The translations under genes and the position numbers were made by a program. The notes beneath the pieces were generated by a model. That model did no database searches, was not told the origin of the DNA, and worked only from the letters and a program-made list of their open reading frames with translations. From Monocercomonoides exilis PA203 (Eukaryota; Protista; Preaxostyla), in contig LSRY02000074.1 of the NCBI GenBank assembly GCA_001643675.2, forward strand, positions 1 through 64,000: 64,000 nt of DNA, given 5' to 3'. This document shows, piece by piece, positions 15,182-62,300 of the stretch; positions within the stretch are counted from its first letter, which is position 1; every line of letters starts with the position of its first letter.

Positions 15182-16252
15182 AATCGAATTCAACAACAAA
15201 ATACTGTTGATAAATTCCAAAAATATGAGCAATTCGCAACATTTACTTATAATTTTATTTTCTTTCTCCTGCAAAAGACATTCGTAAAATAAAAAAATTT
15301 TACCGATAAAAAAATGTTATGGATATTTTCCCATTTTTAAAAAATTCAAGGGAAAAATAAGTTATTTTTTCTATCTTCAATATTTGAATTTTCAGAATAA
15401 AAATATTTTTCTAAGAAATTAAGTTCCAAAGACATCAAAAAATAAATCAAATATCACCAGAAGCATAATTATGCGACTGATTTCTCCAATCTCTGTACTT
15501 AAGAGTATATTTTCCATAGATCTCACAACTATAAAGATTTGAAAGGTGTCATTGCAAATTTGTTGTGTTGGATCATGGTGGTTGAAAGAAAGATAGATGA
15601 GATGAAAAAGAAAACGGAGAAAAAGAAAAAAATAGAAAGCACAGAATGGAATGGAAGGAATAAAGAGTGGATTATTGTGAGATAGATTTTGATGATAAAT
15701 GAGTATTTTTGGTTTTTAAAATTGAGGAGAGATTTAAAATGCAAGAATGACAGCCATCTTAAGAAGTTTTCATTGACAGCAAGTGAGAATGATAAAAAAT
15801 CTTTGAAAAGATGAAGGAAGATGGCTTTGGAGATTGGGCAGTATTTAATCAAAACTCCACCCCTTTCTTTTTGAGCTGGGTGCTGCCAGACACAAACTCT
15901 TTGCTAAAAAATAAATTAGAAATTTTTAGATAGAAAAGAAATGATGACACATGTTTGTTTGGATTAATTCTAATTGCTCCTATGAATCTCATTTTTTTGT
16001 ATTATTTAACAATTATTGCGAATCAAATAATAATAACTGCAATAAATTACAATAATAATCAACATAAACCATGAAATGATAATGTTGAAAAGAAAGGAAA
16101 AGAAAGGAAAAGAAAGTGTTATTGAACTCCATCTTGAAAAACACACAGGAATAAACATATTTTAACAAATCATTTTGGCAGGCAGCACATCTGCAAGCAA
16201 CGTGCTTGTGAAGAGAAAAAACAAACAAATTCCTTTAGCATGACTGATCCCT

Positions 16253-19200
16253 TCACCCTTCAGCCTTTTTGAAACGCATGAAAGCATAAACAAGGTATTT
16301 GAATGATTCTATCCAACCATCTGAATAACACTTCGCACAGATGACATCCTCCATCCCCTGTTCTTCCATCACCTCCAAAAAATACCTCAAAAGCCGATGC
16401 TTATCTGCATATTTAATAGCATTGACCAAAGAATTGTACACTGCCAAGCGATAATAAGATGTGCCAAGAGAAAGCATGCAATTCATGTGCAATGTTACAG
16501 CACTCAAACTCAACAGTACAGGTGACGGAGACCATTTATGCATAGCTTCAGCAACAAAAATTGTTGGTGCTGCAAGTATTTTTGAGCCCAACTCCATCAA
16601 CTTTTTGGACACCTCAAGAGGAATCGAATGAAAAGATCCATAAACTGCAATGTCCAAGCAAACAATCCCAAGCACTTCACGAAAATGTGGCTTTATTGCT
16701 TTCATGCTTTTCTTCACATCTCTTTCCCAAATTTCAAGCAGTTGAATGAAATCGATGTTTAACTTTCCTGACCAGTGTCTCGCTATATCCCTCAAAAACA
16801 ACCCGATACTGCTCAGGGTATATGGATGAAGCTTTTGCTTGCAACATGTTTCAATCAATTTGAAAGCTCTTCTGTCAGCAAAGAGCTTTCCAACTGCGAA
16901 ACGATGACCTAAAAAACGTTTCATAATGCACACAAATTACAGAGCGTGAAATTTAAAGAATCCGAATATTTAAATATGAACAGGCAAAAATAAAAGAATA
17001 ACGATTCATTTATAAACAGAATAAAATCAATAAAAAAAGGTCTCATTCACACCTTTTTCAAACATGTCTGCCATTCCTAGAAACATTGCACAGATCGATT
17101 CCTCGTTCTCTTTGAAGTATGTGTTTTCTCTGTCGTTTTTGTTCTTTCTGTTCGAATCTCCCGCCAACACGTTCAAACATAAATGCAGCATCAATTCACT
17201 TAGAGTTCTTTCTGACACTTTTAAATCAAACATCGCAAAACAAACTGCCAACATCCCATTTCGCATCTTTGCTATGTTGAGCGTGCAAGAATATTCCCTA
17301 TAAAGAGTGGAATGATTCTTCAACAGAGAGAATTGCTGCCTTGCCAATGACAGGCGAATAAATAAAGTTTCAGCCAACTCTTTCGCTTTCTCACTATATT
17401 GAGGCATTTCTCTCTCAAACAGCATCTCAAACGGATAGCTTATGTATTTGAATACATCCTCTCGAACAGCACAATAATAGATTGCGTTGAAGCCAGAAGG
17501 AAATGAAGGGATCAAGTTGCACAGCAAGTGCAGAGTTAGCTCCACTCGCTCGGTTTTGGTCACGTCTTCTTTCAACCAGCGGCAGATCGCAACACTCATT
17601 TTTGATTTTGTGTAGAAGTCAAACTGTTCCTGAGAAGAGTGAGCCAACTGCTCGACCGTCTGAATATACACATCATATTTGACCCTTCGTAGTTCCTCCA
17701 GAGCTGCTGTGACATTCGATATGCAGCGTGCTGCCAACGATGGGCATGCCAAACAGATTGGCGCAAAAGTCTGCAAGCAGCTTTTGAGTTCAGAATAGTC
17801 ATTTGAATTCAAATTGAGAGCGAAGGACTTTGTTGTTGATGAGCACAAACAAGAAAGAACATCGACAGTACAAGAACATCCATCAAGCGAAAGGATTGAA
17901 TGATGTGAATGAATTTCGAAAGAAGAAGAAGACGATAACGACAAAGACGATGACAAAGACGATGATAATGATCGAATTTTAACTTCATCGCCATTTGCAT
18001 CTCCTCCATCGGAAACTGTTTGAATCTCATTCTGTGTATTCGTCCCATCTCTCATGTCTCCTCTTTCAGGCAATTCCTCTCTTTCCTCAAAGCCATCATC
18101 ATCATCAAAAGGATTGACATTTGCAAAATTATTACCATCATCCTCATCAAACAGCCCCTTCGCAGAAATAACCATATCAAATCTATCTCTGGTTGCAACT
18201 TCGTTCTTGTTTTCCTCAGGCTGATCAAGGACTGCTTCTTTTGTTGGCCTCTCAAAATGCATATCCATCTTGTTCTGCACAGACTCAGGAACAGAAATGG
18301 CTCTCAAAACAAACTCGCGGACATGCTTGCGCATCGAACGGTTGAGCAACTGCGCTCTTTCGCCCAGAACAGAAAGAAGGCCAACAGCAAGCACATCCAA
18401 AAATGGAAGACGCTCAAAGAACAGTGTTTCCTCTTTGATTTCTGCAACACATTTGAAAAACGCTTTTGCCAATTTTTCGCTGTTGCTCTCAAGTTCCTTC
18501 TTGGCTGATGGTTTATCTCTGTTCAAGACAAGCAGCTTACTCAAGACGCACAACGAAGCATAGCAGCACTCCGCATCTCCTCTTTTCATTCTTTCAATCG
18601 CAATTTCTTCTTCTTCTTCAATCTCTTCCTCCACTTTCAAGTTCATGAGCTGTTCTGTATTCTCAACATTGCGTATATAAACCACACACAATTCTGCTGC
18701 TTTTGATGCCACACTTTCGAACTCTTCTTTAAAGCACACTTTGCTCTCAAACACAGATTCTGTTTTTCCTTTTTCATCCTCTCTTCCTTTATCTCCTTTC
18801 ATTCCTTCTCCTTCTCCTCCTTCTTCTTCATTGGATGCTTCACTTTTCCGCCCAGATTCTTCGCTTCTCCTCATTTTCTTCAGCATTTCCATCACACTTC
18901 CACAGGCAAAGCTCTTTGCAATCTGCGGTGACACTGCAAATATTACAGAAAGCACACTCAGCGCGTCAGACACAGCAGCACGAGAGGAAGTTCGATTGTT
19001 GCACACTGAATAATAAAGAAGCTCTGCAAGTGACTGCTTGATGAGAGGCCGCAGAAAGTTTGGCAATTTGAGGGAAGAAGGCTGTGGTGAGTGAAGAAGA
19101 AGAAGTGTTGGGACATTACAAGAATTTGACGATGAAGATGATGAAGAGGAAGAAGAGGAAGAAGCAGATGATGGAAACGAAGACAAAGAAGAACGAAATG

Positions 19201-21718
19201 AATTCGTTTTCAGTCTTTCAGAAATCAAATTCTGTCTGACAGACTTCAGAGAGCCCGAAAGAAGATGAAGAAGCATGTTTTGGCTGAGCGGGTGGGAAGA
19301 CAAGAAAACAGACTGAAAAGAAGACAGTGCTTCTTTGCTCGTCAAAGCAGACAGAAGAACAGAACTTTGGAAATCTGAAAGAGTCGTTAATTAAGAAAAG
19401 AGAGATTGAACATGGCATTCGAACGAAAAATGGAAGAAAATGATATTGAAAGCAAGAGAAGCCAAACAACAGAAAAAATAAAGAAAGAAAAAAAGAAAAA
19501 GAAAAGGACCAACAAAAATTCCCCGCATCAAAAGAAAGAAAGGGGAAATAATTGTGACTTGCTCACAAACTGTTCTTTCGGACTATTTCGTTCAAAGCTA
19601 CAAATAGTCTCTCCAAAACTTCCACATTAGCCCCATTTTTCGTGTCTGCAATCCACATGAACAGCAAAACAGCATTCAAAACATCGAAATAGCTTTTCAA
19701 ATGGCAAATCGAGCAGCTGATGCACAAGGCATAAAACTCAGCTAAATTGAATGGAGGAACAAAGAAAGAAGAAGATGAGGTTGATGGTGATGATGAGGAA
19801 GAAGGAAAAGGAGGAGAAGATGGTGAAAAAGAAGCAGAACAGCAAGCATTCAACTCATATGCGCACATTCCTTGTTCAGAAGCTTCAGATGCTTCCTGTT
19901 TCCTGTTCAGCAGCTCTCGCTTCAAAGCACATGAAATTTGGGAAAAACCTCCGTTTGCAGCAAATAAAACCCATCTCCTTCTCATTTCTCTCCGTCTGCT
20001 CTGCTTTTCTTCTTTTTCTTCTTTCTCTCCTATTTCTCTTTTTTCTTCATAAGCCATGGATCCAATTTTGAGTGCTTCATCTCCTTCTCCTTTTTGCCTT
20101 TCCTCTCCTCTTTTTGCCTTTCCTTTCTCTTTCTTGTTGCCTTTGCTGCTTTTTTGCCTACTTTTCACTTTCCTTTTTTCTCTTTCTCTTCCTTTTTCAC
20201 AGTTTGACAATGATCCATTCCGCTTTTGATCAATTTCCTCATTTCCTTCCATTCCTTCTTTTTTCCTCCCCAATTCATTCGTCTTCTCCATCCGCTCTTT
20301 CATCTGATCTTCCTCTTCTTCTTTCGGCTTCAGCAACTTATTCAGCATCTCACAGCAAAACACTCTGAATCCCTCATCTTCCAACAGCAAGCCTCGTAAA
20401 AGTGGCTGAAGATGATGTGCAGATAAACTTGCTACTTCCCCTTTTCCCTGCTTTTCTTCCCCAAACATAAATGCTTCCATGTCTGCTTCTTTTCCATCAC
20501 CATCCTCCACTTCTTCTTTCTCTTCTTTCTCTTCTTTCTCTTCCATCATTCTTCTTTCTTCTCTTCCTCCTCCTTTCTCTCCAGTCCCCATGTCTTCCAC
20601 AGCCAGTTCCATTTCCTGCACCAGATTTCCATACACCAAATTAAACACTCTTTTCCAAATCTCCCACTCTTCGCACTTATCTGCTTCATTGTTCTCTTCT
20701 TCTTTCCCTTCTTCTTTCCCTTCTTCTTTCCCTTCTCGTTTCTGTTTCTGATCCATATGCCGCTGTAGCATTTCTCCCTGTGTCTGCAAAATGAGCATCG
20801 GAACATGCTCTTCACACAACATTTCTCGATACACTTTCTCTTGCCTCGCTGCAATTGCCTCTGCCATCAGACCCATTGCCACTCCCGCCTCACTCCCGCA
20901 GCAGAGGGGAACAAGCGAATGCATCAGCACCAGCGCTTCACGTGCAAAGCTGATGCTCATCACAGATTCATTGCTTTGTGCCAATTTCAAGAGGAAGTTA
21001 AACCCATTCGAGATCACACTTTTCTGGCGTGAAAATCTTTCTCCGCGTGGTGTTGTGTTCGAGAATATATAGAAAAGGCAACGAACCAATAAAAACGCGA
21101 GAAACAAACAATCATATGAAACACACCGAAGTAGTTGCATTTCCAAATCGATAAATCCAGAAATTTCAACATCTGGCGATAAGCTATCGTCTACACACCC
21201 ATTCCAAAAACAAACGAAAAATATATCATTGCAAAAATCAAATCTCGGAGGAAATAAAAATACATACACAACGCAACAATGGTCTGAGAAATATTTACAG
21301 ATGACTCTTCTGCTCTTGCCTTCAATATGGCTCGAACAACTCTCAAAAAGACTTTGCTCCCCAGCCCATTCGAGTTCTTTGCTGAGAGGCATCGAAGAAG
21401 CTCTGAGCATAAAACTATAACCTCTTTTTCGTTCGACCATTTGACACATATTTTTCTCATAACGTTTGCGGCACACACAACCTCTTCTTCCGTGAAATCA
21501 AAATGCTCTCCTCCAACCTTCTCTCTGTTGCATGTCCAAAAACCAATTTCATTCAAAACAAAAACACTTTCCATACGCTATTCTTTCAAAATGCTCCGCA
21601 ATTTCATTTCTATCATTCATTTTCTTTTTCACAAAAAGTCAACAAATACAAAAGATATAAAGCCTTGTTCACATGCTTCAAGATCCGACATCAACGAAAT
21701 CAATGATTCTGAATTCAT
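16253..21718 (-). CDS. Large multi-exon hypothetical protein, predicted alpha-helical (ARM/HEAT-like) with E/K- and S-rich inserts
   Basis: Long same-strand ORFs 21191-21574, 19563-21476, 17027-19345 and 16253-16933 separated by AT-rich intron-like gaps. Plausible first exon MNSESLISLMSDLEACEQGFISF at 21718. Could be two genes. Confidence 0.55.
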
Positions 21719-21999
21719 TTGCACAATCAATTTTCAAATTAAGCAGTATAAAATAAAGGTTAATTCATAAAGTTTGTTATATCTGTTTTGATCAATTTAG
21801 GAGTATCGTTTGAAACCAATTCAGATATTCTTGCAAAATACACATGAGCATACGATGATTGTTCATTCGAATGTAATATTTATGATTTCTGCACAATTTT
21901 TAGTTTTTGAAAAAAATTTTTGAAATATTGTTGTTTTTTTAACAAATGAAAAGAAAAAGAAAAAATCAATTAATAAAACACTTTTTGAGAGTAACAAAC

Positions 22000-22490
22000 G
22001 GTAAGAGGGTACATAGCGACCGGTATAAAAATTGTCTATAAGAAGTACTATTGACATTTGAAAACCTAATTCACTGATGAAATAATTCACATAAAGGAGA
22101 AATATTCGTTAAAAAACTGAATATTTTTTGTGGTTAAAAAGCAATTTTTATCAAAAATTAATGATCAAACCCCTAAGATAAAAAAGAGAGAAACTTTCTT
22201 TTAGGTTTTTTTCGGAAATAAAGATTTATCCATTGTCAATGTGTTTATTAGGGTTATATTTAACGAAAACTTTTGTTTATTTAACTGATAAGGGTTTTTT
22301 ATTTAAAGTGAGGAAGCTTTCAAAATAAAAATTCCTGTTGGATTTAAAAAAAATAGGTTTTCTCAGCTTTGAATCACTGTAATTCGAAAATCACCTGAGA
22401 AATATCATAATTGGTTTCATTAGTAATAGTCTATATATATAAAAACATGTAAATCTAATTTTTTTACCGGTCGTTATCTGCCCACTTACC
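22000..22490 (+). mobile_element. 491-bp non-autonomous TIR element (MITE), copy 1
   Basis: 34-bp TIRs GGTAAGAGGGTACATAGCGACCGGTATAAAAATT and GGTAAGTGGGCAGATAACGACCGGTAAAAAAATT (5 mismatches). Reverse complement of 29340-29830. Confidence 0.92.
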
Positions 22491-23559
22491 TAACCTTTTC
22501 ATTATAAATCTTTCATTCTCATGTTTGAAAAAAAAGGAAAATTTTAATTAAAAAAAGAGAAAAATATTTGAATGTGAAGAATGAAACAAATTTTATCAAA
22601 TAATTTTCTTGATTTTCAAATTTTATCATTTGCATACATGAGAAAGTCGATTTGGAACAGAATATTTGCATGTATGGAAAAATCAATAATGTTTCAAACT
22701 TATCTGCAATCGAATAATTATAAATATGACATTCTCTTATAAAAACAAATATTGAATTATTCGAAAATTGAAAAAAATCTTTTTAAGTGCAATATAGAGC
22801 AATATTCATCAAAAAATATATATCATCTTATTTATAACGAATGTTTGAAGAAAAAGTTAGTTATTTGTTTGTTTTTTATTTTATTAATTACGCAAACTGC
22901 ATCATTTTTTCGAAAATATTTGGTTGCTTTGACTTGAAATTGATATAACCGAATATGCTTCATTTTGAACGGACATTTTCTTCATTATAATTCTTGAAAC
23001 TTTGTTTTGGTTGGAGGTTTTGAACAAAATTTTTTCAAAATGGGTGATTATTTCAGTGAACATATTTTCAAAAACAAAAATTTTCGTTTGGGAATTCACT
23101 TTGAATATCAACAAAAGAACGCTGAAGAGTGAAAAGGCCTATAAAAAACAACAACATCTTTATATGAGCAAAAAGATTTGCTCATCAAACAATGTGATAA
23201 ATACATAAATTGGAGAGAAAAACTCTTCCCAGTTTCAAACAACCTTTAGAAAATGAACACTACGAAAAAATTAATGATTTCAAAAATAATCGCCCACGTT
23301 TGTGTTAAAAAAACAATTATTTTGCAATTTTTCTTTTGAATGAAAAATCATTTCCAAAAAATCAACAATCTATGAAATATCATTACACCTAAATAATATG
23401 TGATTTCCAAAATAAACATTTATATATTAACATATAAAAATTTGATTGACAATGTTCTTAATGATAAAAGACCAGTGAACACTCGATGTTGAGGTTTCTA
23501 TTTCCGTTGTCTTCTACAAAAACAAGCAAAAAAAAATATCCCAAGCTGAAAATTTCAAA

Positions 23560-24617
23560 GTTGAAAATGTTTTATTCAAACAAGCTTGCTGTGTCGCATC
23601 AACAAGTTCTGAGACCCTGGTATGATATGCTCAAAGGATTTCATCTTACCGATTATTATAACAGTGTTCTCATCTTCAATGTGACGAGTCATCGCTCAGG
23701 ATACCAAACAACTCCAATCGGAATTTTGTTTATCCAACAAATGTCAAGCATGCTTTCACAAAATCTGCAGCGCAGATAACATGATCCATATTGATTGCGT
23801 CGATTGCTTCTGATGGTCAATAACTGAAGGTAGTGATACTGTGGATAAGTCTCAGATTTCCTGATGACTTGAATCATCTTTAGTTTTCCAAAACTTGGGA
23901 TATGTCCTAACAAAAGCGGATGGATGGAATCTTTGACATTCAGAAATTTTATGCTACAATTCTTCTCCCTTCGATCAAAGAAAGAAGACAACGCATGTCA
24001 CTCAAAGAATTTCACTGCTTGCTTTTGATTGATTCCCACGTTTCTCGTTCAAATCCAACGATCTGGCGAGAGTTATAAAAAGAAAATGGATATTGTGACA
24101 TTCGTCTTTCACAGCACACACATCTGCCAGCCACTGGACCGAGGTGTATTTGCCGTTCTGAAGTCAGAAATGTGTTCGCAATACGAAGCACCTTCTTCGT
24201 CGTCTTCAGCAGCGAAAAAAAACAGCTTTTGCAGAAGCACTACAGCAATCAATTGATTCAGCGCTTAAACATTCAGTCAACAAAAGAGCTTTGAAATGCA
24301 GCAGCGTGCTGAAAGACTCATCTGGGAAAGATCTGATAAATCTTCCTCAATCATCGACTTATCCTCTTCCTTCACATAAAAATCGATTTGACTTCTACGG
24401 TAAAGAAATATCTGAAGAAAAGTTGCTAAATGAGTGGGATGATTATTTGAAAAAGAAAAGCGTAATGGAAAATGAAAAAGAAAACATTTCTGATGAAGAA
24501 ATTGATGAAACAATAAATTTCACAAAAAAGCTTAAAAGAAAGTTCAAAATTCTTCAAGATGAAAACGATTTTGAGATAGAATCATCTGATGAAATTGAGC
24601 TAGAAAAGGGAAAATGA
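23560..24617 (+). pseudogene. Decayed pogo/Tc1-mariner DDE_1 transposase
   Basis: Fragments NKSGWME, LLLIDSHVSRSN and HSTHICQPLDRGVFAVLK, which are DDE_1 signature motifs, in shifting frames with stops. Confidence 0.8.
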
Positions 24618-25391
24618 AAAGTCAAACTCAAATGAGATTCGAGTTTTGTATTTTTTTATATAATTTTTTAGATTTTTTCATTTCGTTAAATTTCGGGACT
24701 AACAAAAAAAAGAGCTCTGATAAAAATATGACCTTATTCAAAAAGGAAAGAAATTCATTTTAATAAATAAAATTGATGTTTTTCATTTTTTTTCACCATT
24801 TAAATAATAACAACTTTAAATAGAAAAAAGACAATTAACATTTTTCATATGAAAAATGTGATTTATGAAAAAGTTTAATAAATTTGATAATTCAGAAAAG
24901 AGAATATTTTTCTTTAACTATGACATATAAGTGATCTTTTTTGAGTTTGTCTTTAATCTGTTTGCAATAAATGTGATATTTTAATGATAAAAAGCTATTC
25001 CGAAATCGAATGATCGTAACTTTTCTATAAAGTCTTATTATTGGTGTATTTTACAATAAAAAACTCATGATCTTTTCTCCATTTTATTTTCACTGATCTT
25101 GAAGCAAATACATAATTTTGAAGCATCAGTGACTCAAGTTACTTCACCAAAGTCAATTCGAGTCGATAATATTTAAGAGTTAAATTAAGAAAAAGAATAA
25201 TTAAACAAACACAAGGTTGAGCGATGAATAAATTCTTCACTTCAAACACAAGCTCTCCTTTTAAAAAATAATGATTTTTTATGTCAAACGAAATAATATT
25301 CAGAAAAAGAAAATTGGTTTAACTTTATAAAGCAAAAAGTGAACAAATGTTCGCTAAAAAAATTTGTGAAATGAATAAAAAAACAACTTAT

Positions 25392-26830
25392 TTAGTGATA
25401 AACAAAACAATCTTTGAGTTTTTCAAAGAAACTTTTCATATTATATATACCATTGTATAAGAAATAACTAAATCCAATTTCGCAATCTTCAAATCCTTTT
25501 TCTTCCATCTTTTCAAATATCTTTCTTTTCAATTCTTTTCTTTCCTCTTCTTCCTTTTCATCATCCTCCTTTTCTTTCAATCTTCTTGAAATATTCAAAA
25601 AGAAATTCAAGCAATTCCAAATAATTGCATCATCCAAAGTTGATTGATTCATTTCCTCCAAAACCACATCAATTGCTCCCCCTTTCAGCAAGTCTTCAAC
25701 TCTCACATTTCTATTTTTTGCTGCGCTTCTCAAGGAACAAATGCACCAATAGCAAATTTCTCTTTTATTTTCTCTTGCTGCTCGAGATACCTGAACAATG
25801 CTGCTGAAAAGACTAACATATTCTTCATTCCACAAATTACAATAGAGAAAATAAATCTCTAGTATTTCAATCCATCTCATTAAAATAAGCTCTTTTTTCG
25901 ATTCTTCTTTGCTTATTTCTTCGACTTCTTTCTTCTTCCAATCCACGCACTTCGATAGCTCCTCCAATTCTTTTGCTGCCTCTTTCAAAAAATGCAGTTC
26001 GTTCAAACTTACAACTTTAAAACAATGAATGTTAATCGATCGAAAAACCAAAAACTTCCAAATAGACTGATAGGCAAGACAAGTCAGATTTCGATGTTCC
26101 TTATGATATGTGATGATTTCTTTTATCTCATTCAAATACAGATCTTGCCTCAAATCCTGGTAATAGATAAGAAAAATAATAACAATATCAAAAAGGAAAT
26201 AACAATGCTCATACATAAAATTGGTCAACACAACTCAAAGCTAATAAAGCCATTTCCCCTTCTTTTTGAATTTCTTCATTTTCCTCTTTATTCAAGGCGC
26301 CTTTCAGAAGGCAAGGCACACATACTGGTATCAATTCTGATGAGGTGTCGTAACTTAGTGCAAGAAAGCATTCGCAAAGCCCAATAAGCAGCTTCTCGTT
26401 CTTTCCTTCTTTCTTCTTATTTTCTTCAATTATCATCTTTTCAAATTTTGTGCCCAACAAAGAACTGTCAAAACTTTCGATGCAAAGCCCTTGTAATGAA
26501 TTGCAGAATCCAATAAACTTCGATAGCACAATCGTATTTTCCAACGATAGTTTGTTTGCTTCAAGCATTTTACCAATTTTGTCGAACAATTCTCTTGAGA
26601 AAATAGATTTAAATTCCTTTTTATCCATCTTGTCCATTAGTCCATAAAGTTCCTCTATTTTTTGTTTTTGCACTTCTTCCTTGCAATTTCCCAGCTCAGA
26701 AAACAATTCTTCAATTAAAAAAAAGAAAGAAAGAAATTCAACCATCACAAATTCAAACACAACAATTCTGACAAACCAGTAAATTTTTCAATAATGGAAA
26801 ATTTCTGCATTTTTTCGAATATGGCACAGC
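25392..26830 (-). CDS. Lineage-specific helical protein family member (multi-exon)
   Basis: EKFT/ELFSELGNC..CVPCLLKGALNKEENEEIQKEGEMALLALS, an intron at about 26214-26157, then LYLNEIKEIITYHKEHRNLTCLAYQSIW..EKMEEKGFED. Start approximate. Confidence 0.7.
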
Positions 26831-28593
26831 CAGAAAGCAGCTTAATTATTCATATTTATTCGAAAAACGAACACAAAAAGTTAAAAGTAATTGAGTGAAT
26901 ATTAACCCCCAAAGCATAGGCATTTCGAATGTGCACACCACAGTTTTTTCTATTTGTATATTTGCCAAGCGACTGAAGAGCAAATCAAAGCTTTATCAAT
27001 TATCCTTTTTTGTAATGGTTGATTGGATCAGATTAATTGTTTTTATCAAGACTTTTCAATAATGCAACGAGAGGTCGATGATGAAATTTTTCTTTGGAAC
27101 AGTATTTTTATTTTCTCCGTGATGTGATGGTTCACAAGAAATCCATTGAAACAGCTGAGTTTCGAATGAAACATTTCATATTTGAAAACACAGGTGGTCT
27201 GCTCATAAAAATATTTTTTGAAAAAATAATTGTTCTAGTTTGCTTTTTTTTTCATATCCTTCTGCTTATTGTGAACATGCTTCATTTTGCTGAATTTTCA
27301 GAATCATTGGATCTTGTAATCAGAAATAATGCCAATTTTTCTTTGCTGAGCGTGAAAACCAAAGATGGAAAGATTATTGTATTTCGATTGAAAGAAAGGA
27401 AAATATATCGATCTTTGATCATGAAACAATTATTTATTGGATCAAGGGATGAAAACAAACTCAGCTCATCAATCATCAGCTATATTCATGAAGATTTAGT
27501 TCTCTGAAAAATGAAGTTTTAACAATAAATAAATTGATCTTCGAAAGGAAATAAAAATGGAATATATTGAGATATTTTCGTCAAAGAAAGTGGCTTGTTT
27601 TTAAGAAAGATGAATATTGTCTGCGAAAGAGGAAAGAATTTGTTCCAAGCAATGGAACGGATGATCCCATTGAAGATTGAACACCATTCTAACTTTTTTT
27701 AAATATCAGAAGGGAAATAAAGAGTTTCATGGTTTTATTTCCCTATTATTCATGTAGATGCATCAACCATTTTCGAAATAGAATGAACTTGAAATCTTCA
27801 AGAACTGCCTCACAAGAGCATTAGATTGGATATCCGTTTGAAAACACAAAGTTGGACAAAAATCAATCTTTATCATATTCTTTTTCATTAATGCATTAAA
27901 CAACAAGAAGAAATACAACTCATCTATTTCATTTGGAAGTTATTTTTCATCACATCAATCGCCATAGAATTTTGATATCTCATTCTTTTGCTTCTGAATA
28001 TCCATCTTTCGCAACCCAGTTTGTTGACAACGATGCCAAAATGCAATCAACTCAGAATTCTTTCTTCATGTTTTTTCTTTTGCCATTATTTCTTCAAACC
28101 TTTGAACAAAACATTTCAAGCTCCACAAATTATTTTGTTCGTTTTGAAAAATCTATTTTGAGCAGTGACATTCATCCCTCTTCAACAAAACCAATCACTT
28201 AAGATCAATCGACGAATCCATCATATTCTTCAGCCTTTTTCATTCTTTCCCTCAGAGGTTTTTGAAAGGTCAATTACAGTCATTTGTTATTTGTTAATTA
28301 TATTTTGCTCATCAGAAAGAGTGCAATTGGCAATGACCAGTGCTATAAGTTGACAGAAACTGAACCAGCCGCACCATTCCAGAAGGAATGTTATCCTTCC
28401 CATTTCTTCTGACAAATGCTCCTACGTTCTTTTTTCACAAGATTTATAATCTTAAACAATTCTGCATTATTTATAGTGTTGATGGTCTTTCCCATTTGCA
28501 TTTTTTCTTTAAGGTTCATTCATCATTCAAAAATATTCTCTTTTTATCATCATTCTTCTTATTCTCTTGTCAAATGACTTGGATTTGTACGTG

Positions 28594-28790
28594 ATGGAGG
28601 GAAACAGAGGAATCAGCAGAAAACGAGCGGATTGGCGCAAACGAACAAATCAGAAGAATGGCTGATGAAAAGCACTGACAGAAGGGAAGAATGGTGAATT
28701 TTTGGTGGAGCCTTTTCGAATTGAAGGGAAGAGACAAGCCAAACAATGAAGATGCATTGCGAAGAAAAGAAAGCTCTTGAGCAGATTTTA
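28594..28790 (-). repeat. About 200-bp segment, inverted copy of 30672-30868
   Basis: Both copies translate to FGLSLPFNSKRLHQKFTILPFCQCFSSAILLICSFAPIRSFSAD and differ by a few substitutions. Confidence 0.9.
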
Positions 28791-28805
28791 TTTTCGAACT
28801 ATGAC

Positions 28806-29259
28806 ACACCAAAAATTATTCAAAATGAGAATTTTTGCATTCAAAAAAATAAAAATTGCATTCAAAATAATAATTTTGCAAACAAAATAAGAACTTTTGC
28901 GTTCAAAATGGAAATTTTGCAAACAAATTAATAATTTTTTCAAACGAAATAATAATTTTTGCATTCGAATTAATAATTGTTGTAAACCTAACAAAAATTT
29001 ATTCGCACTCTCACCAAATTTTGTGAAAATCAGTTTGCCACTTTTGAATCGGAAATAATTTTGTGTTGTCATAATTTTTTTGTACGAAAGAAAAATTTTT
29101 GAAATTTTTAATTTTCTGACATAAATTTTAATAATTTCATATAATTATTATTCATATGAAAACATAAGATATTTTCATTTTGAATGAAAAATTTTTTAAT
29201 TCGTTTGCAAAATTATTAATTCGATAGTAAAAATTCTCATTTTGAATAATTTTTGGTGT
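28806..29259. mobile_element. About 454-bp MITE-like element with about 31-bp TIRs
   Basis: Starts ACACCAAAAATTATTCAAAATGAGAATTTTT and ends AAAAATTCTCATTTTGAATAATTTTTGGTGT. Subterminal AATAATTTTGCA-type repeats; no clean TSD. Confidence 0.75.
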
Positions 29260-29339
29260 ATTTTAATAAAAAGAAACTTCATTTTCACTTTTATTTTCTT
29301 TTACGAATTTTTTAAAAAATGAAAACCATTTGTTTGTTA

Positions 29340-29830
29340 GGTAAGTGGGCAGATAACGACCGGTAAAAAAATTAGATTTACATGTTTTTATATATATAGA
29401 CTATTACTAATGAAACCAATTATGATATTTCTCAGGTGATTTTCGAATTACAGTGATTCAAAGCTGAGAAAACCTATTTTTTTTAAATCCAACAGGAATT
29501 TTTATTTTGAAAGCTTCCTCACTTTAAATAAAAAACCCTTATCAGTTAAATAAACAAAAGTTTTCGTTAAATATAACCCTAATAAACACATTGACAATGG
29601 ATAAATCTTTATTTCCGAAAAAAACCTAAAAGAAAGTTTCTCTCTTTTTTATCTTAGGGGTTTGATCATTAATTTTTGATAAAAATTGCTTTTTAACCAC
29701 AAAAAATATTCAGTTTTTTAACGAATATTTCTCCTTTATGTGAATTATTTCATCAGTGAATTAGGTTTTCAAATGTCAATAGTACTTCTTATAGACAATT
29801 TTTATACCGGTCGCTATGTACCCTCTTACC
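29340..29830 (-). mobile_element. 491-bp non-autonomous TIR element (MITE), copy 2, inverted
   Basis: Same length as 22000-22490 and identical to its reverse complement in spot checks. Confidence 0.92.
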
Positions 29831-29976
29831 AAAGGTTATTGAAAAAGTTCGGAATAAATCGTTGTTTTATTTTTTTAATGAATGTATTTTACTTTTTATT
29901 ATTATTTCCTATTCAACTTATTTTATTTTGGGTATTTCGGATTTTGGAATTTTCAGATCATAATTGTTATTTGAAT

Positions 29977-30255
29977 ATGAATCCTCCAGGCAAAAAATAT
30001 CAGATTTTCGTGAGGTCATTGACAGGGAAAACAATGGTTCTTATGATTTCAAAAGAGGATACAATTGAAAATATTAAGAAACAAATTGAAGAAAAAGAAC
30101 GAATTCCAGTATCAGAACAAAGAATTATTTTTTCTGGCAAAGAGCTTGTAAACAATAAAACAGCGGAGGATTACTTTATCCTGAAAGAAGCTACACTTCA
30201 TCTTGTGCTGAGGCTTCCTGGTGGAATTCCATTTTTCTGTGAAATCACAAATTAG
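29977..30255 (+). CDS. Divergent ubiquitin-like protein with LRLPGG plus a 9-aa tail
   Basis: [69 protein letters not shown]. Confidence 0.85.
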
Positions 30256-30671
30256 AAATATCATCACATTTTTCATTGATCATGTTGAGATGGCTTTGTC
30301 TGTGTTCCAATTTTTTTAATTTGTACTGAATGCCCGTTTAACTCGAAGGGTCCTTGGGCTTTCCGGCAAGCAGCTGGAAAACAATAAAAGCACAAACAAT
30401 CATATTTATGAAAGAAAGAAAATGAATGTTTTTCTTGTCTTTTGAATTAGTGGAATATCTTAAACATTTTGAGAGTTTATATTCCAATAATTTAATTATA
30501 ATTCTTGTTTTTCGTTGTTTTTTAAAGAATTTGACTTTCTGTTCAAAATTTTGGCATTCTTGTGTTATTTTGAAAATGTTTTTATTGTTCAATTTTCATT
30601 TCAAAATCTCATGATCATTAACATGGAAAAGAAAATGAAATGAAAAATTTGAAACAAAATTGATGAGGAAA

Positions 30672-30868
30672 AAAAATCAGCTCAAGAGCTTTCTTTTCTT
30701 CTCAAAGCATCTTCATTGTTTGGCTTGTCTCTTCCCTTCAATTCGAAAAGGCTCCACCAAAAATTCACCATTCTTCCCTTCTGTCAGTGCTTTTCATCAG
30801 CCATTCTTCTGATTTGTTCGTTTGCGCCAATCCGCTCGTTTTCTGCTGATTACTCTGTTTCCCTCCAT
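30672..30868 (+). repeat. About 200-bp segment duplicated at 28594-28790; start of a decayed gene-like region
   Basis: Direct comparison. Confidence 0.85.
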
Positions 30869-32093
30869 CCCATGCAAATCTCAACATCTTGGCAAGAGGA
30901 GGCAAATGTGAAGGTGAAGGAGAAAGAGAAGGAGAAGGCGAAGGAGAAGGAGAAGGAGAAGGTGAAGGAGAAGGGTTTGCTGTTGAATCCCTTGGCCAGC
31001 ATTTCATGCGCAGAATACAACAGCAAATGCACCGAGGATGCCAAAGATTCAAGTCAACAAATTCAGAATGCTCACAGAAGAACAGAGACAAATCACGACT
31101 CGCTGCTCTCCCTCATCTTTTCGCATCTGCCTTGCCTTCCAATCACCAACCAAAAAGCTCCTCTTGTTCTCTTCTTCCTCTTTGCTGCGATCATCCTTCG
31201 CCTTCCTGTTCATTGCCTTTGCCTCCTCAAGTTGCGTGGGGGTGTCTGCTTCATCCATCACATCGCAAAGTCCATCCTTCCCTTTTCACTCAAATTGCCC
31301 CCTTTCCCTTCTCTTTCATCGTTCTTGCTCTCACACCCTTTCCCCATCGCAGAAGAAGCCGAAGATGATTCTCTCTCGCTCCTTCCAAACCCGTCAATCA
31401 CCAGTTCCCCTCCAACTCTCGCATCCAAGCATGCCATATTTCCTTGTTATCCCCTCTTTTTTGTTTCCTGTTTCTTCTGTTTCTCCTTCGCTTTCACACA
31501 AATACTGATCGTTTCATTTGTCAAGGACGTTTCATAATTGCTCTGCTGCCTCCACCGATCTCTCTCCATCTCTATTTATGCTTTTCTCCTTTTTCCTCTT
31601 TTCATTGATGCTCTTCTTGCCTTGCCTTTCCTTGCCTTGCACTGCAAATGACGCACTAACCATTCCTCAAATGTCCGTTGTTCCGATGCCACTTTGTTTT
31701 CATATCCAACAAAATCGTTTGTTCTTCATTCGCACGAAATAACGACTTGGCTGTCTGGGAACAGATGAAGAGGCCAAGAAAACGTTTGTTTGTTTCCCAC
31801 AAAGCTTGACTTTAATACTCCATCGAAAGGGGCTTCTTTGCCTTTCCCCGCGATCCTCCAACTTATTTGCTTGATGGCTCAAACTCGCCGACGCCCTTTG
31901 TCGATGCAAGGCCATATTCTTGAAGAAGACGAAAAGCACTGAAAAGTGCGCAGCTTGGCAAACGAGGCTGATTCGCGACATCCACGGGCTCTAAGAAAAT
32001 GCAATTGCCTGCCCCACCAAACAAAGTGCTGCGCCTTTTTCATGAACAACAACAATTCACTCTTCCTTTTCTCCTCAAATTTCACAATTCCCT

Positions 32094-35000
32094 TGTCCCT
32101 TCCATTCCACTCATAAATTAACAAAAAAGGTGCCACCACACTTTCTGCACCCGTCAGCCATCGCATATCGAGAAAAGGCCATTTTCTTTTGTTCACTCGA
32201 TCAGATGGATCATCCCACCCACACTCACATGCAATTGTTCCCAACAAAACACAAAACACTCACAACACCACAAGAAGCAGCACGGGCCGTGCGGCATGCT
32301 CAGTTAACAGGATATGGTGGAAAAGAAAAAAACAGAAAAAAATTTTGGATGGAGGAGTTGGAGTATGGGAGGGGCGGGGCGGAAGGGGCGAAATTGTTTG
32401 GATCTTTGTTTGAAAGGATCAAAATGCTTGCACAAGTATTGGCAGAAACGGCGGAGCAAGAGTGGAACTACGGCAACGTGATCATGGCAGGGTACATGAT
32501 TGCGGCGCTGTTTTTCATCATGACGCTGAGGTGTGTGGCTGTGGTGTTTAGCGCCTTCGGCAGCTCTTTGGGGCTGGTGGGGGCGTGTTTGGGCTGAAAT
32601 TCATTTTGTTGTTTTTTGTGTCTTTTCTTGTGTGCTTGCGCTTGGGGGTGGTGTGGCGTGCGGCGCGGCTGTGGTTTGTGTTCTGTGCTGACTTTTGTGG
32701 CGACTCGAACAAACAACCAAACAACCAAACAACCAACAAATGATAAAAACGCCTCCTTCAATCGACGAATCTGGCGAAACAAACGCATCCTGCGAACGAT
32801 TTGCACGTGTGGGCTGTTCTGCATCTGGGCACACGGAACACGAAATACGAACAATGTCAATGAAAAAAAAAACTGATGAATGGTTCAATTCAGCGGATTG
32901 AGCAACCAGGAGAGTGCGAAGAAAGGAAACTGGTACGGCGTGATTGGGATGATGTTTGGCGTGGCGCTGGCGACGGTTGATGCGTGGCACGATGCGACAG
33001 CGAAGGGGGCAGACATCTGGAAGATTCTGGGGACGATTGTGCTGATGATTATCCCGGGAGCGTCGATCGGGGTGTATGTGGCGCTGCGTGTGGTGATGAC
33101 GGCGATGCCGGAGCTGATTGCGTGCCTGCACTCGTTTGTGGGGCTGGCGGCGACGCTGATTGGGTACGGGAGCTTCTTCAACGACGAGCATGCGGAAGGG
33201 ACGTTCAACGTGGGGCTGCAGCGGCTGGAGTGCTTCCTGGGGATCTTCATTGGGGCAGTGACGTTCACGGGGTCGCTGATTGCGTTTGGGAAGCTGAACG
33301 GGAAGGTGCCGTCGAAGCCGTACATGTTTGGGGGGAAGTACCGGATGTGGATCAACGGGGGCATCATTGGGATCTCGCTGGTGTGCATGATGCTGTACAT
33401 GTATGGGCTGTCGTGGGGGTGGGACCTGATGAACCTGACGGTGGGGACAGTGCTGTCTCTGGTGCTGGGGGTGGTGCTGATCATGGCGATTGGGGGAGCA
33501 GACATGCCGGTGGTGATATCGATGCTGAACTCGTACAGCGGGTGGGCGACGGCGATGTCGGGGCTGATGCTGAGCAACATGGTGATGGTGGTGACGGGGG
33601 CGCTGGTGGGGTCGTCGGGTGCGATCCTGTCGTACATCATGTGCCGGGCGATGAACCGGTCGTTCATCTCTGTGATTCTGGGCGGGTTTGGAGAAGGGGC
33701 AGGAGGAGCAGCGGCGGCAGCAGCAGTGGAGGGAGAGATGAAGGAGATCCAGCCGATGGATGCAGCGCAGCTGGTGGCGAAGTCGAAGTCGATTATCATT
33801 GTGCCGGGGTATGGGATGGCAGCGGGAAAGGCGCAGCATGCAGTGGCAGCGATCACGAAGCTGATGAGGAAGCACGGGTGCAACCTGCGGTTTGCAGTGC
33901 ATCCAGTGGCTGGGCGTCTGCCGGGGCACATGAATGTGCTGTTGGCAGAGGCGCGTGTGCCGTATGACATTGTGATGGAGATGGAGAAGATCAACCCCGA
34001 CTTCCCGTCGACAGATCTGGCGATTGTGCTTGGAGCGAACGACATTGTGAACCCGTCAGCGCTGGACGACCCGAACTCGCCGATTGCAGGGATGCCAGTT
34101 GTGGAGTGCTGGAAGGCGAAGAACGTGATAGTGATCAAGAGAGGGAAGGGAACAGGATATGCGGGTGTGGAGAACCCGCTGTTCTACAAAGAGAACACGC
34201 GGATGCTGTATGGGAATGCGCTGGCGGTGTGCGAGAAGATGCTGGCGAACCTGACGGGGATCCTGGGAGACTCGTCGGCGGTGGCAGCAGCAGCGCCGAA
34301 GGTGGACGAGACGACGCCGCTGAAGCAGGAGGAGAAGGCAGGATACCAGACGCAGGAGAAGTTCCCCGACCCGGTGCACTTTGTGGGGGTGCCGAAGGAG
34401 GTGTTTGGAGGGGAGAGGCGTGTGGCAGCGACGCCGGAGTCGGTTGTGTGGATGAGGAAGATGGGCTTTGGAGTGTACATTGAGAGCGGGGCAGGAGAGC
34501 ACTCGCGGTTCAGCGACGAGGACTATGTGAAGGTTGGGGCGACGATCTGCCCGAATGCGGAGGAGCTGTACAAGAAGGCGGAGATTGTGCTGAAGGTGCG
34601 TCCGCCGCAGGAGCACCCGGTGTACAAGGTGAACGAGTGCCAGCTGATGCGGCAGGGAACAGTGATTCTGTCGTACCTGTACCCGGCGCGGAATGGGGAG
34701 GTGATGAAGGAGATGGAGAAGGCAGGGGTGACGGCGATTGCGATGGACCAGATTCCGCGTATCTCGCGTGCGCAGAAGTGCGATGTGCTGTCGTCGATGG
34801 CGGGGATCTCGGGATACCGAGCAGTGATTGAGGCGGCGTCGTATTTCCCGCGGTACATGACAGGGCAGATCACGGCAGCGGGGTCGGTGAAGCCGGCGAA
34901 GGTGCTGATTGTTGGGGCGGGTGTGGCCGGGCTGGCAGCGATTGGAGCAGCGAAGGGGCTGGGAGCGATTGTGCGGGCGTTTGACTCGCGTGTGGCGGTG

Positions 35001-36705
35001 CAGGAGCAGATTGAGTCGATGGGGGGAGAGTTCCTGACGGTGAGTGTGAAGGAGGACGGAGAAGTGGCAGGAGGATACTCGAAGGCGATGTCGGAGGCGT
35101 ATGTGCGTGAGGAGATAGCGCTGTTCACGCGGCAGGCGGAAGAGGTGGACATCATCATCACGACGGCGCAGATCCCGAACAAGAAGGCGCCGGTGCTGGT
35201 GACGGCGGAGGCGGTGTCGAAGATGAAGGCAGGGTCGGTGATTGTGGATCTGGCGGCAGAGACGGGAGGGAACTGCGAGCTGACAGTGCCTGGGAAGACG
35301 ATTGATGTGTCGAACGGAGTGAAGATTGTGGGAGAGACCGATCTGGTGGGGAAGATGGCGACGCAGGCATCGACGATGTACTCGAACAACCTGTGCCACC
35401 TGCTGGACGAGATGGGGAAGGCGCAGAACTTCTCGGTGGATGAGAAGAACGAGATCATCTATGGGTCGCTGTGTGTGATCCAGGGGAAGATCCGATGGGA
35501 TCCGAACAGGAAGCCGGTTTCGGTGACGGCACAGAAGAAGCCAGCCGGAGCAGCAGCAGCAGGAGCAGCAAAGCCAGCCACACCAGCAGCACCAGTGGCA
35601 GCAGCAGCAGCAGCAGCAACAGAGAAGAAAGAGGAGCAATCATTGCATGCGCCAGCAGGAGGAGAAGAGGAGAAGAAGTCGAAGGGATGGTTCTTCTACT
35701 TCAAGTGGACGCTGTTTGTGGTGTTTGTGGTGGGGATTCTGATTCTGGCGGTGTTCATGACGACGGAGATGCTGAACCTGATTGTGATCTTTGTGTTTGC
35801 GATCTACATTGGGTTCATGGTGATCTGGAATGTGACGCCGTCGCTGCACACGCCGCTGATGTCGGTGACGAATGCAGTGTCTGGGATCATCATCTGCGGA
35901 GGAATTGTGGAGCTGACAGCGCCGTTCCTGGGGGTGTGCTTCTGTGTTGGGGCAGTGTCAGTGTTCCTGGCGTCGATCAACGTGTTTGGTGGGTTCATTG
36001 TGACACACCGGATGCTGCAGATGTTTGTGATGGAGAAGAAGATGAACTAAGTGCAAGATGGAAGATGCAAAACAGCAAGAATGGAATATCTATTTCATTT
36101 TTGTTTTTGTTTTTGTTTTCTTCTTTTTCTTCTTCAACATCCTTTTTTCTTTCTTTTTTTATTAAGAAGAAATTATATAGTGCATACCTTTTATCTTTTC
36201 TTTATTTGACTGTTGTGTGCTTTTGGCAAAGAGTCCATCATTCTGTTGTTATTGAGTGCTTTGTTGAGCTGCAAGAAAGAAAGAGGTGAAGAGAGTGAGG
36301 CGTTTGTGTGCGAGCATTTTGGAGCAGTTCGTTCGAAAGCACGTTTGGAGCCATTGGAATTTCATATTCATTGACATGTTTCACGTCAAAACATAAAACT
36401 GTATTGAAGCAAATCAAACATTTTTTATCAATATTTTTTTTTCTTATTAAAATTATTTTTGAAAGAAAGCAATCAAAATGCTTCTTCCAAAAGTGAAGAA
36501 TTTGAAGAGATGGTCCAAGTGCACCTCTGAACAAAGAAATGGATGAAGTGGGAAATGTTTGCATTCCAGTTGAATCCATTAAAAAAATAAGAGTTTTGCC
36601 TTTTTTTTTCTGCAGGAGCGTTGATGAGGAGCAACGAGTTTATTGAGAGAGCGGAGAATTGGAGTGAAGAATAGGTATGGAAAGGATTTTAACGATTTTC
36701 AATAC
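32094..36705 (+). repeat. Left arm of an inverted segmental duplication of at least 4.6 kb (partner 59390-64000)
   Basis: The window end 64000 corresponds to 32094. Homology decays near 36705 / 59390. Confidence 0.95.
32424..36050 (+). CDS. NNT: Proton-translocating NAD(P)+ transhydrogenase, single-chain beta-linker-alpha form (about 1087 aa), copy 1
   Basis: Exon 1 32424-32530 (MLAQV..GYMIAALFFIMTL), GT-AG intron 32531-32893, exon 2 to TAA. Motifs LHSFVGLAA, GGADMPVVISMLNSYSG, AMNRS, PGYGMA, HPVAGRLPGHMNVLLAEA, GVPKE..ERRVA, GAGVAG and LHTPLMSVTNAVSG. Confidence 0.97.
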
Positions 36706-59389: not shown

Positions 59390-62300
59390 ATATTGAAAAT
59401 TTAAAATCCTATCTCATTCTTCTCTCCAATTCTCCGCTCTCTCAATAAACTCGTTGCTCCTCATCAACGCTCCTGCAGAAAAAAAAAGGCAAAACTCTTG
59501 ATTTTATCCATGGATTCAACTGGAATGCAAACATTTCCCACTTCATCCATTTCTTTGTTCTTCAATCATCTTTTTGAAATGCACTTGTACCATCTCTTCA
59601 AACTCCTCATTTTTTGGAAGAAGCATTTTGATTGTTTTCTTACAAAAATAATTTTAATAAGAAAAAAAAAAATTGATAAAAAATGTTTGATTTGCTTCAA
59701 TACAGTTTTATATTTTGACGTGAAACGTTTCAATGAATATGAAATTCCAATGGCTCCAAACGTGCTTTCGAACGAACTGCTCCAAAATGCTCGCACACAA
59801 ACACCTCCCTCTCTTCACCTCTTTCTTTCTTGCAGCTCAACAAAGCACTCAATAACAACAGAATGATGGACTCTTTGTCAAAAGCACACAACAGTCAAAT
59901 AAAGAAAAGATAAAAGAATGCACTATATAATTTCTTCTTAATAAAAAAAGAAAGAAAAAAGGATGTTGAAGAAGAAGAAGAAGAAGAAGAAAACAAAAAC
60001 AAAAACAAAAATGAAATAGATATTCCATTCTTGCTGTTTTGCATCTTCCATCTTGCACTTAGTTCATCTTCTTCTCCATCACAAACATCTGCAGCATCCG
60101 GTGTGTCACAATGAACCCACCAAACACGTTGATCGACGCCAGGAACACTGACACCGCCCCAACACAGAAGCACACCCCCAGGAACGGCGCTGTCAGCTCC
60201 ACAATTCCTCCGCAGATGATGATCCCAGACACCGCATTCGTCACCGACATCAGCGGCGTGTGCAGCGACGGCGTCACATTCCAGATCACCATGAACCCAA
60301 TGTAGATCGCAAACACAAAGATCACAATCAGGTTCAGCATCTCCGTCGTCATGAACACCGCCAGAATCAGAATCCCCACCACAAACACCACAAACAGCGT
60401 CCACTTGAAGTAGAAGAACCATCCCTTCGACTTCTTCTCCTCTTCTCCTCCTGCTGGCGCATGCAATGATTGCTCCTCTTTCTTCTCTGTTGTTGTTGCT
60501 GCTGCTGCCACTGGTGCTGCTGGTGTGGCTGGCTTTGCTGCTCCTGCTGCTGCTGCTCCGGCTGGCTTCTTCTGTGCCGTCACCGAAACTGGCTTCCTGT
60601 TCGGATCCCATCGGATCTTCCCCTGGATCACACACAGCGACCCATAGATGATCTCGTTCTTCTCATCCACCGAGAAGTTCTGCGCCTTCCCCATCTCGTC
60701 CAGCAGGTGGCACAGGTTGTTCGAGTACATCGTCGATGCCTGCGTCGCCATCTTCCCCACCAGATCGGTCTCTCCCACAATCTTCACGCCGTTCGACACA
60801 TCAATCGTCTTCCCAGGCACTGTCAGCTCGCAGTTCCCTCCCGTCTCTGCCGCCAGATCCACAATCACCGACCCTGCCTTCATCTTCGACACCGCCTCTG
60901 CCGTCACCAGCACCGGCGCCTTCTTGTTCGGGATCTGCGCCGTCGTGATGATGATGTCCACCTCTTCCGCCTGCCGCGTGAACAGCGCTATCTCCTCACG
61001 CACATACGCCTCCGACATCGCCTTCGAGTATCCTCCCGCCACTTCTCCGTCCTCCTTCACACTCACCGTCAGGAACTCTCCCCCCATCGACTCTATCTGC
61101 TCCTGCACCGCCACACGCGAGTCAAACGCCCGCACAATCGCTCCCAGCCCCTTCGCTGCTCCAATCGCTGCCAGCCCAGCCACACCCGCCCCAACAATCA
61201 GCACCTTCGCCGGCTTCACCGACCCCGCTGCCGTGATCTGCCCTGTCATGTACCGCGGGAAATACGACGCCGCCTCAATCACTGCTCGGTATCCCGAGAT
61301 CCCGGCCATCGACGACAGCACATCGCACTTCTGCGCACGCGAGATACGCGGAATCTGGTCCATCGCAATCGCCGTCACCCCTGCCTTCTCCATCTCCTTC
61401 ATCACCTCCCCATTCCGCGCCGGGTACAGGTACGACAGAATCACTGTCCCCTGCCGCATCAGCTGGCACTCGTTCACCTTGTACACCGGGTGCTCCTGCG
61501 GCGGACGCACCTTCAGCACAATCTCTGCCTTCTTGTACAGCTCCTCCGCATTCGGGCAGATCGTCGCCCCAACCTTCACATAGTCCTCGTCGCTGAACCG
61601 CGAGTGCTCTCCTGCCCCGCTCTCAATGTACACTCCAAAGCCCATCTTCCTCATCCACACAACAGACTCCGGCGTCGCTGCCACACGCCTCTCCCCTCCA
61701 AACACCTCCTTCGGCACCCCCACAAAGTGCACCGGATCAGGGAACTTCTCCTGCGTCTGGTATCCTGCCTTCTCCTCCTGCTTCAGCGGCGTCGTCTCGT
61801 CCACCTTCGGCGCTGCTGCTGCCACCGCCGACGAGTCTCCCAGGATCCCCGTCAGGTTCGCCAGCATCTTCTCGCACACCGCCAGCGCATTCCCATACAG
61901 CATCCGCGTGTTCTCTTTGTAGAACAGCGGGTTCTCCACACCCGCATATCCTGTTCCCTTCCCTCTCTTGATCACTATCACGTTCTTCGCCTTCCAGCAC
62001 TCCACCACCGGCATCCCTGCAATCGGCGAGTTCGGGTCGTCCAGCGCTGACGGGTTCACAATGTCGTTCGCTCCAAGCACAATCGCCAGATCTGTCGACG
62101 GGAAGTCGGGGTTGATCTTCTCCATCTCCATCACAATGTCATACGGCACACGCGCCTCTGCCAGCAGCACATTCATGTGCCCCGGCAGACGCCCGGCCAC
62201 TGGATGCACTGCAAACCGCAGGTTGCACCCGTGCTTCCTCATCAGCTTCGTGATCGCTGCCACTGCATGCTGCGCCTTTCCCGCTGCCATCCCATACCCC

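Follow-up and report, generated by a model that had tools for sequence, protein, structure and literature searches.

How did two oppositely oriented copies of one short transposon come to lie 6.85 kb apart, each carrying on its inner side a flank that belongs with its partner? The question is raised by the first 64,000 nucleotides of contig C74 (LSRY02000074.1) of Monocercomonoides exilis PA203, a stretch that we call the window and that we compared with other loci of the same PA203 assembly. The transposon is a 491-bp miniature inverted-repeat transposable element (MITE) of the Merlin superfamily, and sequence comparison indicates that the DNA between its two copies underwent a real, very recent 6.85-kb inversion bounded by these inverted, identical copies. 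How the inversion came about, by recombination between the copies or as part of transposition itself, is the second half of the question. The features on which the argument rests are as follows.

22000-22490, plus strand: Merlin MITE copy A, 491 bp, with terminal inverted repeats (TIRs) GGTAAGAGGGTACATAGCGACCGGTA and GGTAAGTGGGCAGATAACGACCGGTA, which are common to autonomous 1.48-kb Merlin elements.
29340-29830, minus strand: Merlin MITE copy B, 491 bp, of the same sequence as copy A.
21992-21999, plus strand: outer copy of target site duplication (TSD) A, TAACAAAC, present once in paralogs (TGACAAAC in contig C70 and TGACAGAC in contig C17).
22491-22498, plus strand: inner copy of TSD B, TAACCTTT, the reverse complement of AAAGGTTA, brought here by the inversion.
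29332-29339, plus strand: inner copy of TSD A, GTTTGTTA, the reverse complement of TAACAAAC, brought here by the inversion.
29831-29838, plus strand: outer copy of TSD B, AAAGGTTA, single in copies of the repeat that hosts it.
22491-29339, no strand: inverted segment, 6,849 bp.

Read along the window, the order is thus TAACAAAC, copy A (+), TAACCTTT, the segment, GTTTGTTA, copy B (-) and AAAGGTTA. Aligned to each other, the two copies show 0 differences in 491 positions, and a repeat search returned inverted arms of 495 nt (22000-22494 and 29336-29830) that are 100% complementary, made up of the 491-bp element and 4 bp, TAAC, common to both target sites. Once 22491-29339 is flipped in silico, each copy gains a perfect TSD, with 8 of 8 positions matching; at the local base composition, two such 8-mer matches would be expected by chance with a probability of about 1.6e-9. 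The shared TAAC starts both target sites in element orientation (21992-21995 and 22491-22494, with its reverse complement at 29336-29339 and 29835-29838). A shared start of this kind has a chance of about 0.006, no such preference is seen in 23 other TSDs of the MITE family, and the coincidence is probably due to chance.

If the segment was inverted, then undoing the inversion should recreate sequences that exist without the MITE, and this is what we found at both breakpoints, using paralogs and other repeat copies as proxies for the allelic un-inverted chromosome. At breakpoint A, the left outside flank (15602-21999) has two paralogs, C70:199007-205629 (88-92% identity) and C17:941697-935321 (94%), both of which lack the MITE and hold target site A as a single copy. 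Beyond this target, C70 and C17 run straight into the reverse complement of the window from position 29331 downwards. Over about 4 kb, the window from 29337 down to 25445 is collinear, in reverse, with C70:205624-209936, in three blocks, and C17 has the same relative orientation for window positions 27406-25459.

C70:205624-205702: window 29337-29259, reverse.
C70:205703-207226: window 28804-27285, reverse.
C70:208064-209936: window 27292-25445, reverse.

Breakpoint B lies in a host repeat of about 190 bp that was hit by copy B, and its two halves are now separated by the segment.

22499-22622, minus strand: one half of the host repeat; the other half is 29831-29892.

The flipped join, that is, the reverse complement of 22499-22622 followed by 29831-29892, aligns unbroken to three copies of this repeat, two of them arms of one locus on contig C64 near 282.9 kb (L057) and the third at C25:1723807 (L058), and each of the three contains AAAGGTTA once. 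No match spanning an un-flipped join was found among the loci compared, a control that covers those loci and not the whole genome. The junctions at both breakpoints are contiguous alignments with no deletion or duplication beyond the TSDs. Because both pre-insertion sites are rebuilt only by undoing the inversion, the arrangement in the window is the derived one. These results agree with a first-pass annotation of the same DNA, made from its letters alone, which had described the MITE copies as identical, their 8-bp flanks as swapped and repaired by flipping 22491-29339, the segment as inverted by an event involving both copies, and that event as recent: the alignment and the flip bear out the first two points, the TSDs together with the C70 and C17 paralogs and the three host-repeat copies support the third, and the absence of differences between the copies, along with two perfect TSD pairs, supports the last.

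This argument presupposes that the element makes 8-bp TSDs as a rule. The genome holds at least 40 copies of the 491-bp element at 73-94% identity; the closest to the A/B pair is 94% identical to it (29 differences), the rest 73-90%. In 23 other full-length copies, the flanks match at 8 of 8 positions in 14 cases, at 7 of 8 in 2 and at 6 of 8 in 3; when a left flank is paired with the right flank of another locus, mostly 1-4 of 8 positions match. An 8-bp TSD is therefore the rule for this family, and the concern, voiced in the first-pass annotation, that other copies might not make such duplications is answered by the 14 perfect ones among 23. Among the 25 full-length copies, A and B are the only independent pair with crosswise-matching flanks. 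One further cross-match, between L025 (C5:1367936, -) and L026 (C5:1408801, +), comes from a duplicated locus: these copies lie 41 kb apart, inverted, with the same TSD and similar flanks, and are an inverted segmental duplication carrying a MITE, not two separate insertions. Four full-length copies have no TSD (L005 at C2:795360, L011 at C33:1014705, L017 at C91:34552 and L020 at C32:685489), and no swapped partner for any of them was found among the 25 copies examined. About 0.9 kb from L020 lies an incomplete copy in inverse orientation that has the same flank, suggesting a small inverted duplication.

The affiliation of the element bears on the mechanism, since it determines which transposase could have acted. 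Merlin elements are defined by TIRs starting with 5'-GG and by TSDs of 8 or 9 bp (PMC8101967). The 26-bp TIRs of the MITE (GGTAAGAGGG... and GGTAAGTGGG...) begin with 5'-GG, in line with this definition (PMC8101967), and a pattern search of the genome found the same 26-bp TIRs paired about 1,485 bp apart at four sites.

C10:806373-807856: autonomous Merlin partner with the same TIRs as the MITE.
C63:318586-320070: autonomous Merlin partner with the same TIRs as the MITE.
C30:383133-384617: autonomous Merlin partner with the same TIRs as the MITE.
C7:1291210-1292697: autonomous Merlin partner with the same TIRs as the MITE.

All four of these 1.48-kb partners (L071-L074) have a perfect 8-bp TSD, and two contain an intact open reading frame (ORF) of 348 amino acids with a DDE_Tnp_IS1595 domain (PF12762, 4.5e-18). 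Three of the partner copies are 98-100% alike, and the transposase source therefore appears to have been active recently. The 491-bp element itself is short, non-coding and multicopy, makes 8-bp TSDs and has a partner with the same ends and a DDE_Tnp_IS1595 transposase; judged by these features, it is a classical non-autonomous Merlin MITE, so that the first-pass annotation was correct in calling it a MITE and can be made more specific. The hAT and P superfamilies, which also make 8-bp TSDs, were considered and rejected, given the DDE_Tnp_IS1595 protein encoded by the partner, whose TIRs are identical.

A survey of Merlin elements described at least seven families in Monocercomonoides sp. PA203, with 8-bp TSDs and TIRs of 23-29 bp (PMC8101967). 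The nearest of them, F7, resembles the present element in its 5'-GG termini, 8-bp TSD, length of about 1.49 kb and DDE_Tnp_IS1595 transposase, but its TIR begins GGTAAGAGGGAACATAAC rather than GGTAAGAGGGTACATAGC, and the two TIRs diverge after about 16 nt. Unlike the families of that survey, the 491-bp derivative is similar to its autonomous partner only over the terminal 27-30 bp. MITEs are mentioned neither in the main text of the survey (PMC8101967) nor in the paper describing the assembly (PMC8767320). Elsewhere in the genome, Merlin transposase matches of equal score lie close together and face in opposite directions at C16:1002503/1012414, C19:624302/625146, C25:1119886/1149312 and C80:178071/180449; these four pairs are candidates for further inversions or inverted duplications.

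How, then, was the segment flipped? The history to which we give about an even chance has three steps. One MITE copy would first have inserted at TAACAAAC or at AAAGGTTA; the transposase of a 1.48-kb autonomous Merlin would then have placed a sister copy, in opposite orientation, at the second site 6.85 kb off, each insertion making its own 8-bp duplication; and homologous (ectopic) recombination between the inverted copies would finally have flipped the intervening DNA, exchanging the inner halves of the TSDs. On this reading the flip would have been a separate recombination step and not part of transposition, and the A/B pair may still be able to flip. Ectopic recombination is the default and best-documented route, and the locus shows what it leaves behind: opposite copies at both breakpoints, exchanged TSDs, and single targets in the un-inverted proxy references. 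Ordinary transposition, often over short distances, is also how MITE families expand. Moreover, exchange between inverted repeats looks active in this genome, because an inverted duplication of about 6 kb in the same window has blocks at 99-100% identity.

Three observations weigh against this three-step history. The proof of recombination would be chimeric copies, a test for which the identical A and B offer no informative sites. All other copies in the genome are at most 94% alike to them, so that the only recent gain of a copy in the family coincides with the inversion, which makes a one-step event the more economical account. Finally, the references are paralogs and other repeat copies instead of an allelic un-inverted chromosome. 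The one-step account, to which we attach rather less than an even chance, is a hybrid-element insertion: after replication, the transposase would pair the left end of the single MITE with the right end of its copy on the sister chromatid and insert this hybrid 6.85 kb away on the same chromosome, so that one event would account for the inversion, the additional MITE copy and the exchanged TSDs alike. Published models predict chimeric copies from ectopic recombination of separate insertions and identical copies from hybrid element insertion (PMC2775673), and the 0 differences in 491 positions, when the next copy in the genome differs at 29 (94%), fit the latter. The junctions without deletion or duplication beyond the TSDs fit it too, the short distance between the copies follows from it naturally, and the matching transposase looks intact and recently active. 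Against this stands that a local hop followed by recombination yields exactly the same sequence, that perfect 0.5-kb inverted repeats 7 kb apart would be expected to recombine within the time scale of the first substitution, and that no biochemical or genetic evidence of such activity is known for Merlin or IS1595-type transposases. A one-step origin of such inversions, in which the IS1595-like Merlin transposase of M. exilis would pair sister-chromatid ends, is to be read as a tentative and somewhat doubtful proposal. The first-pass annotation had offered recombination or a transposition-coupled inversion, and both are still live options; its wording for the latter, intramolecular transposition, is, for a cut-and-paste DDE element, better understood as a hybrid-element (sister-chromatid) insertion than in its simple form. 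Two related arrangements can be rejected: a composite transposon in which A, the segment and B moved as one unit, since TAACAAAC and AAAGGTTA on the outside do not form direct repeats, and reversed-ends transposition via the two inner ends, since the same is true of TAACCTTT and GTTTGTTA on the inside.

Two further readings were weighed. In one, an assembly artefact or a mixed culture, the un-inverted order would be that of the true chromosome or of most cells, and the assembler would have taken a wrong path at the 495-bp repeat. The repeat is perfect, and nowhere else in the assembly do the flanks match at 100%, which leaves no alternative contig for comparison. However, the assembly (82,301,135 bp in 101 contigs, N50 1,379,369 bp) was built from Oxford Nanopore data with Canu 1.8, from about 12.9 Gb of reads (roughly 150x) with an N50 of 8.9 kb, and polished with Nanopolish and Pilon (PMC8767320). 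Any read crossing one 491-bp copy fixes its junction, and a mis-join is not expected at so short a repeat. As reads with this N50 cross a 0.5-kb repeat, and many of them the whole 7.8-kb structure, a wrong orientation is unlikely, and we regard an artefact or a mixed culture as improbable. Inversions are not mentioned in the assembly paper (PMC8767320). More improbable still, to the point of being barely credible, is a programmed switch, in which a site-specific recombinase flips the segment and so alters the expression of neighboring genes. In its favor, the identical inverted repeats each lie upstream of a gene that points outward: the gene at 19563-21476 starts about 520 bp from copy A, and 147 bp separate copy B from the ATG (29977) of a ubiquitin-like gene. 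But a Pfam scan of 16 ORFs in and around the segment found no recombinase domain, the repeats are typical copies of a dispersed transposon that elsewhere has normal TSDs, and the exchange is limited to distal upstream DNA; nearer to both genes, the upstream DNA has kept its place.

The genes concerned are the following.

25392-26760, minus strand: gene of a lineage-specific family, in two open frames (26760-26209 and 26231-25392), with no Pfam domain.
19563-21476, minus strand: flanking gene with a 637-amino-acid frame and no Pfam domain, within the segment that is duplicated in C70 and C17.
29977-30255, plus strand: flanking ubiquitin-like gene (PF00240, 2.2e-22).

The first of these is the sole clear coding unit in the inverted segment, which is AT-rich and whose larger ORFs contained no Pfam domains; it is uninterrupted, and its paralogs in C70 and C17 share 82% and 77% amino acid identity with it over the N-terminal frame. 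The event broke no gene. The paralogs belong to a segmental duplication found at 77-94% identity at no fewer than three loci, at least these being window 15602-21999 plus 25445-29339, C70:199007-209936 and C17:931948-941697, which holds two long low-complexity ORFs in addition to the gene family of 25392-26760. The inverted segment also contains several unrelated repeats, among them the following.

23040-23296, no strand: an unrelated repeat, dispersed and about 260 bp long; the genome has 527 candidate copies of it.
28806-29259, no strand: nested foldback-type repeat of about 450 bp, which is not in the C70 paralog.

The foldback-type repeat has TIRs of about 110 bp starting ACACCAAAAATTATTC, internal 21-bp tandem repeats and at least 95 candidate copies in the genome. 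Because it is missing from the paralogous C70 site, it was inserted after the segmental duplication. A 230-bp repeat at 93-94% identity occurs at 28564-28793, at 30669-30898 and again at C74:65212-65442, and its two copies in the window are inverted now and would have been direct before the inversion. The inverted duplication of about 6 kb mentioned above comprises 30491-36492 and, running past the end of the window to C74:65624, 59612-64000. A spacer of about 23 kb separates its arms, which are 94-100% identical in blocks and each hold a complete beta-alpha NAD(P) transhydrogenase ORF (32880-36050, +). This pair could itself flip or be homogenized.

Taken as a whole, the locus shows very recent reshaping of the M. 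exilis genome by Merlin elements and their MITEs, and it provides a structural variant that is defined to the base and can be tested. Transposons are known to rearrange chromosomes in this way, and the locus is a well-supported case of this textbook kind of event, in which no gene was disrupted. The choice between recombination and one-step aberrant transposition is a question so far unaddressed for the Merlin superfamily. If the one-step account is true, the gain of a copy and the inversion were a single transposase-driven event, and if such events recur, they could account in part for the numerous small inversions and inverted repeats noted across the genome.

How does this inversion compare with known ones? 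Ectopic recombination between inverted transposon copies is generally recognized by exchanged TSDs, as established for Galileo (PMC2775673), and the inversions 2j, 2q7 and 2z3 of Drosophila buzzatii arose by this route between inverted Galileo copies (PMC2775673). The Galileo inversions share with ours one opposite copy at each breakpoint, exchanged TSDs and a target that is single in the un-inverted reference. They differ in that Galileo belongs to the P superfamily, with 7-bp TSDs, long TIRs and inversions of megabase size, whereas here a 491-bp Merlin MITE with 8-bp TSDs bounds 6.85 kb. The 2z3 copies, moreover, are chimeric, which proves recombination, and the Galileo references are standard chromosomes, in contrast to the identical copies and paralog references available here.

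Demonstrations of hybrid or alternative transposition come, to our knowledge, from two superfamilies alone, P and hAT, studied in flies and maize; we know of none for Merlin. The product predicted for hybrid element insertion of P, and for alternative or sister-chromatid transposition of Ac/Ds, matches the one in the window (PMC2775673), namely, an inversion with two identical inverted copies and exchanged TSDs and with no other loss or gain. In contrast to the P and Ac/Ds cases, the single-copy parental chromosome is an assumption here. Inversions bounded by bacterial insertion sequences (IS) arise by homologous recombination between inverted copies or by replicative intramolecular transposition. 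They likewise feature inverted copies with split TSDs, although their elements are prokaryotic, and we know of no replicative mechanism for IS1595 or Merlin. Merlin transposases are related to the IS1016/IS1595 group (PMC8101967). In kind, the M. exilis event belongs with the inversions made by Galileo in D. buzzatii and with those bounded by IS in bacteria, and it is distinct from both in its Merlin superfamily element, its amitochondriate oxymonad host and its small size.

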